Shown here piece after piece: positions 2,630-3,295 of a stretch of DNA of 64,000 bases (the first letter of the stretch is position 1; every line of letters starts with the position of its first letter). Made by a program: the position numbers and the translations under genes. The stretch comes from Sminthopsis crassicaudata (lineage: Eukaryota), in the NCBI RefSeq assembly GCF_048593235.1, contig NC_133617.1:111188937-111252936 (forward strand). The letters are read 5' to 3'. The notes beneath the pieces were generated by a model. That model saw only the letters and a list, made by a program, of their open reading frames with translations. It did not search any database and was not told the origin of the DNA.

Positions 2630-3295
2630 CTTTCATTTAAATATCTGTATTCACCCATAGTATGCATTTGTTCTATGGGGAGGGGGGAATTGACATCTGG
2701 AACTTAATTGTGTACACTCCAACACCTCCCTACACTAAAAATTTTAAAGAAGCCTCAGTCTCTTCTGTGGCTGCTTGGGGAGGACTGCTTGGGGACTGTT
2801 TTTGGATATTGTTTGGACTGGGGGTCCATGGCTGGCTGGGCTTTGGCTCTCCTCTTCCAGCGACCTTTGGGAGAACTGGCTGAGATCACTTCTTGGGGAT
2901 CTTCTCCTTGGGACCAATTGGAGAAGGGTTCGAAGATAGTTTCAGAGCAAATCTTCCATTCTGTGGGAGGGCCTGGTTGGATTTTTACTGCTGATTTGGC
3001 CAACGAATCGTTACTCTGATTGAAATGATGGGGCTTCAGGGGCTTCTCCTTGGTCCCATTGAAAGGGGTTTTCAGAGGTTATCTCGGAGGATGTCTTGGA
3101 TATTGCACCCGGATCATATAGGACAATTGGTGTCCTCTCCAGAGGAGCACTGTCGATATTATCAGGATAGGCCAGGGTGGCTTTCTGCTGTCCTTTGGGG
3201 AAACCAGGAGGGAATGGTTCCACCAGAACAAGGGGAACTGCCAGGCTCATACAAAGAAACCCAAAAGCTAAGCTTCTTAGCCAAGATGGGACCAT
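2630..3295 (-). pseudogene. Family A copy 1: putative secreted Pro/Ser/Thr/Glu-rich protein, frameshifted
   Basis: ORF 3295-3011 starts MVPSWLRSLAFGFLCMSLAVPLVLVEPFPPGFP (hydrophobic, signal-like). After two frameshifts near 3030 and 3000 it continues as ORF 3003-2755. It aligns codon-wise with copies at 41061, 49020 and 16433. Confidence 0.5.

Follow-up and report, generated by a model that had tools for sequence, protein, structure and literature searches.

Four decayed segments of a Sminthopsis crassicaudata contig, probable remnants of the main coding exon of a multigene family seen so far only in dasyurids

The window analysed here is a stretch of 64,000 nucleotides from contig NC_133617.1 of Sminthopsis crassicaudata (assembly GCF_048593235.1, positions 111,188,937 to 111,252,936 of the forward strand). 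It contains four homologous segments, at positions 2630-3295 (-), 41061-41772 (+), 16433-16617 (-) and 49020-49572 (-), called below copies 1, 2, 3 and 4, respectively. The question raised by this locus is whether these segments are the remains of a protein-coding gene and, if so, of which kind. The initial annotation had read them as disrupted copies of a possibly unannotated gene for a secreted protein. We propose that they are decayed copies, some recognizable as pseudogenes and others as fragments, of the main coding exon of what is probably a multigene family, seen so far only in dasyurids. The coordinates of the different parts are collected in Table 1, together with those of copy 5, which corresponds to the upstream part of the unit.

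Table 1. Location of the family-related features in the window, with the strand and the basis of each assignment.
Feature	Position	Strand	Basis
Duplicated block with copy 1	1258-5663	-	self-blastn
Copy 1, main coding exon, pseudogene; 3 in-frame stops, 1 frameshift near 3032-2994	2730-3465	-	tblastn, hmmsearch
Copy 1, splice acceptor AG after a pyrimidine tract, intact	3466-3467	-	read from sequence
Copy 3, last ~25 codons of the main exon and 3' flank	16432-16621	-	blastn 84%, alignments
Copy 5, head only, no main exon; exon-1-like module (18951-18982) and donor	18250-19459	+	blastn
Duplicated block with copy 2	38103-43190	+	self-blastn; identity profile 73-94%
Copy 2 block, order of parts: head, intron, main exon, spacer, ORF1-like	head 38103-39102; ORF1-like 42291-43170	+	self-blastn
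Copy 2, first coding exon, ATG and ~10 codons (MVKKNQVLPH)	38788-38818	+	short-query tblastn
Copy 2, GT donor	38819-38820	+	read from sequence
Copy 2, intron, ~2.07 kb	38821-40891	+	copy 1/2 alignment
Copy 2, main coding exon, pseudogene; at least 2 frameshifts, at least 4 in-frame stops	40892-41630	+	tblastn, HMM
Two units of the 52-53-aa repeat (56-nt direct repeat, 159 nt spacing)	41246-41301, 41405-41460	+	repeat search
Copy 4, main exon from about codon 110 to the stop (49145-49143)	49143-49576	-	blastn; tblastn E 3e-13; HMM 4.5e-14
Intron piece equivalent to 39903-40184, inverted relative to copy 4	49574-49890	+	blastn 75%

The homology of the four segments was borne out by blastn of the window against itself. 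Copies 1 and 2 were 75% identical over 2878 nt (1258-3948 versus 43164-40398), copies 2 and 4 were 72% identical (41207-41760 versus 49576-49018) and copies 3 and 2 were 84% identical (16432-16621 versus 41741-41554). The segments were aligned by MAFFT and their stop-free translations were compared. All the peptide strings quoted in the initial annotation were found in the stop-free pieces of the copies, and the motif described there as twice repeated corresponded, in copy 2, to the direct repeat listed in Table 1, the two units of which were 80% identical. The homology between copies 1 and 2 extended beyond the ORF, over approximately 5 kb (38103-43190 versus 5663-1258), with later insertions and deletions. 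The two blocks were inverted relative to each other and full of L1 pieces. The copy 1 block had no equivalent of 38440-39978, exon 1 included, and an L1 3' end (3977-4845) was nested within its intron. The main exon was 78% identical between copies 1 and 2 and the flanks were 80-86% identical, so that the exon was no better conserved than its surroundings. The region is better described as a cluster of old, rearranged duplications than as a simple mosaic of insertions that occurred independently. The highest conservation within the duplicated block was observed at 41979-42156, corresponding to 2294-2430 (-), with 94% identity between copies 1 and 2, compared to about 80% elsewhere. A third fragment of this best-conserved part (27869-27958, 90 nt, 91% identity) stopped exactly where an ERV, covering 27959-36290, starts.

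From the window alone, the ORF was indistinguishable from open non-coding sequence. Among the 13 indels that separate copies 1 and 2 in the ORF, four were multiples of three. The open stretches of each copy were no longer than those of dinucleotide shuffles (P 0.08-0.19), and the antisense strand was equally open. The dN/dS ratio in the proposed frame ranged from 0.78 to 1.12 among the window copies, with no sign of purifying selection. Neither the stop count of a three-copy majority consensus, nor the indel phase, the dN/dS ratio or the ORF length set the exon apart from neutral DNA. The neighbouring ORF1-like region, taken as a control, behaved in the same way, which indicates that coding tests are powerless on copies that decayed after their duplication. 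It is the relatives found outside the window that prove the coding frame.

A profile built from the aligned stop-free pieces of the four copies was searched against 1.84 billion representative proteins. Six proteins or clusters were matched, with E values from 1e-36 to 7e-5 and two to seven matched stretches apiece. All six corresponded to RefSeq models named "uncharacterized protein LOC...", with sizes of 264-696 aa, and were multi-copy. The six clusters (50% identity) comprised more than 20 models from Sarcophilus harrisii, Sminthopsis crassicaudata and Antechinus flavipes, and most of them held several near-identical paralogues with neighbouring LOC numbers. Intact copies are found, for example, at LOC127544682, LOC116419470 and LOC141543869, and also at LOC127544681-83, LOC127543023, LOC141542445-57 and LOC141550024-51. 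The members were distributed over at least two to three chromosomes per species, and one identical Antechinus protein was recorded on three contigs. Two Antechinus paralogues had been automatically named "proteoglycan 4-like". The marsupial family with intact members, put forward in the initial annotation, does exist, with open ORFs of 264-696 codons in three dasyurid species. The term "unannotated" has to be given up, as models are already present in RefSeq for the three annotated dasyurids.

When the intact proteins were compared to the window by tblastn, copy 1 (E 2e-38), copy 2 (E 5e-33) and copy 4 (E 3e-13) were recovered, and an HMM of the intact family found only copies 1 to 4 within the window. 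The 264-aa Antechinus form followed the reconstructed ORF collinearly over its entire length, Gly/Phe-rich tail and stop included, and was likewise collinear with copies 1, 2 and 4. The common reading frame proposed for the segments was thereby confirmed, the intact proteins of the three species aligning along its full length. The reconstructed ORF itself is a real coding frame, but its start was misplaced, as coding reaches 57 codons 5' of the proposed ATG, up to the splice acceptor. The pieces of the four copies and the intact proteins showed no relevant match in Pfam and no sequence match in the PDB, and no paper was found for the six LOC identifiers of the family. Word-index protein searches with pieces of 145 and 94 aa were blank, the relatives being longer than, or too diverged for, this kind of search. 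The ESM Atlas provided no usable match (low recognition score of 1055), Rfam gave a sub-threshold chance match only in the region 39800-43400, and no relative was found in metagenome contigs scanned with the family alignment.

The closest examples are XP_051827410.1 from Antechinus flavipes (264 aa), XP_031795751.1 from Sarcophilus harrisii (391 aa) and XP_074125646.1 from Sminthopsis crassicaudata (541 aa). The dasyurid models and the window copies have in common the order of the parts (N-terminal block, 52-53-aa repeat, Gly/Phe tail, stop), the Trp-containing acidic motif and the basic WKR motif of the repeat, and the exon layout, with 39-47% amino-acid identity. The window copies differ in that they are broken and belong to a short subfamily with two repeats. 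This short subfamily is intact in Antechinus and absent among the Sminthopsis matches. As far as the six matches show, S. crassicaudata appears to possess intact long forms, and the short form only as the relics present in the window. In a maximum-likelihood tree of 109 N-terminal columns, copy 1 grouped with the 264-aa Antechinus subfamily (support 93/90), apart from the clade formed by the long forms of devil, dunnart and antechinus. This grouping indicates that the subfamilies are older than the species, and points to birth-and-death evolution.

The protein homology in copy 1 begins 2 nt downstream of the acceptor AG. The first 11 residues of the intact proteins were absent from the main exon region, and short-query tblastn placed the N-termini of the family upstream of the copy 2 donor, at 38788-38818 (E 8e-4 for protein P0018 and 7e-3 for P0024). 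The copy 2 acceptor dinucleotide (40890-40891) has changed from AG to AT. The exon-1-like module of copy 5 is followed by a consensus donor, AAG/GTGAGA. A gene with two coding exons is thus predicted from the window, in which a short start exon (about 10 codons) is joined by splicing to the main exon; each exon was aligned separately. Residues 1-70 of P0006, a Sminthopsis isoform with a differing N-terminus, aligned with 40732-40944, contiguously across the acceptor (58% identity, E 1e-23). This isoform is read as a putative intron-retaining model. The main exon opens with an N-terminal block, LVQEQ..KAKSL.FRGPPH, located at 3463-3400 in copy 1 and 40894-40960 in copy 2, with a stop in each. 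The repeat unit is present four times in P0001, with an exact period of 52 residues.

None of the four copies has kept an intact reading frame, as stops, frameshifts or truncations are present in all of them. Copy 1 has retained its acceptor and lost the exon 1 region. Its ancestral stop codon lies at 2732-2730, and the match to protein P0004 is split into residues 15-142 (3451-3032, 47% identity) and residues 160-264 (2994-2725); the family HMM gave 1.5e-29 by hmmsearch. In copy 2, with its ancestral stop at 41628-41630, residues 15-255 of P0004 aligned with 40906-41601, a stretch that contains seven stops if read in a single frame, and the pieces found by the HMM change frame. The stop codon of copy 3 is mutated to TGG, and this copy is fused to a 3'-truncated L1 ORF2 end. 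Copy 4 is 5'-truncated and frameshifted. The inverted intron piece next to it runs into an assembly gap at 49895, and the pair could be the result of an inversion or a twin-priming-like retrocopy. Copy 1 keeps one frame for 144 codons and then for another 90, and the frameshifting indels that separate copies 1 and 2 fall mostly on the copy 2 side. This is a hint that copy 1 died later, and suggests that its frame was constrained for some time.

The surroundings of the copies are L1-like, and two readings of the family must be compared. We favour a host multigene family, which probably accounts for the data, given the shared junctions, the resumption of homology, the lack of retrotransposition marks, the retention of the 2-kb intron and the near-inactivity of L1 in dasyurids. 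In the other reading, the ORF would be the cargo of a half-L1-like element made of a head, a long extra 5' region and ORF1, without ORF2, and carrying a spliced accessory ORF on the sense strand. The RefSeq "genes" would then be young copies of the element, and the window copies old ones. This second reading is rather unlikely, and several observations speak for it. The 1-kb head carrying exon 1 has a sharp 5' end common to three copies (38103, 18250 and 5663). Both long copies, 1 and 2, end just past the ORF1-like part (43170-43190 and 1258-1240). In copy 5, the head (38103-39102 versus 18250-19273, 78% identity by blastn) is joined directly to ORF1-RRM-like sequence homologous to approximately 42596-42842 (42596-42820 versus 19250-19441, 70%). 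The local alignment score of copy 5 was 191, compared to at most 61 for shuffled sequences. An extra C-terminal exon of the Antechinus protein XP_051831051.1 (P0022, residues 267-342) matched 59651-59424 (-) with 50% identity (E 2e-19), inside a repeated block next to ORF1-like sequence and not beside any of the copies in the right order; a second, weaker match was found at 10994-11140 (-) (E 1e-3). The presence of members on at least two to three chromosomes per species, and of an identical protein on three contigs, also counts in its favour.

Other observations stand against the cargo reading. The region 42291-43170 and the downstream stretch of copy 5 are read as a putative marsupial L1 ORF1, with a resemblance to ORF1p motif by motif, but the ORF1-like stop-free pieces had no match in Pfam, in the PDB, in a word search (71-aa piece) or in the ESM Atlas. 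Neither a poly(A) tail, a target site duplication (TSD) nor a terminal repeat was present at the unit ends (39903/43190 and 38103), and retroelements do not usually keep an intron of 2 kb in their genomic copies. The border with an unrelated L1 fragment is the same in copies 1 and 5 (87% identity), and copies 1 and 2 become homologous again past this L1 insertion (9426-9778 versus 38099-37758). Such flanking junctions common to copies 1, 2 and 5 indicate a duplication at the DNA level and not independent insertions. Finally, L1 is reported to be almost inactive or close to extinction in dasyurids (PMC4408412, PMC5010896), so that recent retrotransposition is not a ready explanation for the near-identical paralogues.

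Several other elements of the window were recorded. Head and ORF1-like sequence with no recognizable ORF2 downstream, a half-L1-like arrangement, was seen at 18250-19800 (+) and 60153-57833 (-). Large inverted duplications with approximately 75-88% identity link 19440-26771 to 60153-50773 and 9242-14514 to 52081-55950. Two 407-nt direct repeats, 99.3% identical, are located at 22235-22641 and 23560-23966; the ORF pieces between them matched the Pfam families rve (1.3e-11) and IN_DBD_C (1.1e-11), a retroviral integrase core and an integrase DNA-binding domain. The segment 22235-23966 looks like a young, internally deleted LTR element. Downstream of copy 1, the segment 474-851 (-) consists of a 16-nt tandem repeat of about 20 copies (538-851) followed by 26 A (499-474), and may be the tail of an unrelated retroposon. 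Just past the copy 2 block, a decayed hAT-type transposase was detected at 43392-44710 (-), with a weak Pfam match to Dimer_Tnp_hAT (E 0.017) and a translation resembling Charlie-like transposases. The description of the four segments as the plain long 5' UTR of an L1 subfamily was dropped as a main explanation after the search of the 1.84 billion proteins.

A third reading would deny the existence of a real protein: the ORF would be non-coding repeat DNA poor in stops, such as an old L1 5' UTR, and the RefSeq models would be artefacts predicted on transcribed repeats. We consider this improbable. It would agree with the behaviour of the open stretches, which resemble dinucleotide shuffles and are as open in antisense, with the ESM Atlas score and with the lack of a predicted fold and of Pfam, PDB or literature matches. 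It does not agree with the ORFs of 264-696 codons that have stayed open (more than 20 models) in three species separated for tens of millions of years, nor with the conservation of the start exon, the splice sites, the N-terminal block, the in-frame repeat unit and the C-terminal tail. The long single frame of copy 1, with most frameshifts taken by copy 2, also speaks against it.

Hydropathy, charge and composition were calculated for seven intact members. The initial annotation had placed a signal-like sequence at the start of the ORF and called the protein secreted. The intact proteins begin approximately 85 residues upstream of this point, and the hydrophobic stretch, near residue 76, is internal. 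The best 19-residue hydropathy within the first 30 residues was negative in all seven members, and by hydropathy there is no signal peptide at the N-terminus. The internal hydrophobic stretch was seen in some members only, with maxima from 0.5 to 1.7. The net charge ranged from +23 down to -4, and the proteins contained 9-14% Pro and 9-14% Ser. AlphaFold2, run with the shallow family alignment, returned a mean pLDDT of 45 and no secondary structure, which fits a protein predicted to be disordered. The label "mucin-like or precursor" finds no match in Pfam, and the name "proteoglycan 4-like" reflects composition only. A secreted, mucin-like or precursor protein is very improbable. The composition is rich in Pro, Ser and Thr, and some members carry some 18 residues of moderate hydrophobicity (hydropathy up to 1.67), but these residues, from about position 76, include prolines and give way to polar ones in the 264-aa, 494-aa and 459-aa forms, and the true N-terminus is hydrophilic and basic. 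The product of the family is basic and most likely an intracellular, rapidly evolving, lineage-specific protein.

Three known systems can be compared to the host family that we favour. In the account of primate L1 ORF0 (Denli et al. 2015, as summarised in PMC4859970), a short ORF of the L1 5' region, antisense, 70 aa long and primate-specific, uses its donors to fuse to downstream exons. The dasyurid family resembles ORF0 as thus described in having a start codon and a donor within a repeated L1-like head, spliced to a downstream exon, and differs from it by a module that is on the sense strand and only 10 codons long, in a head whose L1 origin is putative. The non-autonomous HAL1 (half-L1) elements, as outlined in papers citing Bao and Jurka 2010 (PMC5753468, PMC4859970), recall the arrangement of both long copies and of copy 5, where ORF1-like sequence comes after a 5' region and ORF2 is missing. 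The differences from HAL1 in this outline are the absence of poly(A) and TSD, the additional 3.2 kb or so between head and ORF1, with an intron and a coding exon, and the DNA-level duplication of the copies. L1TD1, a eutherian host gene domesticated from L1 ORF1, shows that L1 sequence can give rise to a host gene (PMC4161310); its protein is derived from ORF1, whereas the dasyurid protein has no similarity to ORF1p. It is possible, as a tentative proposal, that a LINE-1 served as the scaffold of a new dasyurid family, which would parallel, on the sense strand, the ORF0 fusions of primates. The promoter, the start codon and the donor would have come from the 5' head of an L1 or half-L1, with splicing to a new repeat-rich exon placed between the head and ORF1, and the unit would later have been amplified either as a host gene or as half-L1 cargo.

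In our model of the family, an intact member would use its tiny first exon for the start codon and 10 residues. The large exon would encode the conserved N-terminal block of about 45 residues, two to seven Pro/Ser/Lys/Glu-rich repeats of 52-53 residues and the short Gly/Phe-rich tail. The number of repeats would change by unequal exchange of the unit of approximately 156-159 nt, and members would be gained and lost, by birth and death, as segments of L1-rich DNA are duplicated. The window copies belong to an old, rearranged and partly inverted duplication, and none of them is able to make a protein.

The present analysis unites more than 20 uncharacterized RefSeq models of three dasyurid genomes into one lineage-restricted, multi-copy family of disordered repeat proteins with two coding exons, the subfamilies of which live and die differently in each species. 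The RefSeq models were already known; the anatomy of the family is newly described, no publication on it having been found. Lineage-specific biology, often that of reproduction or immunity, typically draws on families of this kind. The window copies are dead, and their main use is as dated relics. If exon 1 is truly derived from the 5' end of an L1, the family would be a clear marsupial case of a new gene that received its promoter, its start codon and a splice donor from a retrotransposon. This would bear on the question raised by ORF0 (PMC4859970), whether ORF0-like functions have arisen independently outside primates.
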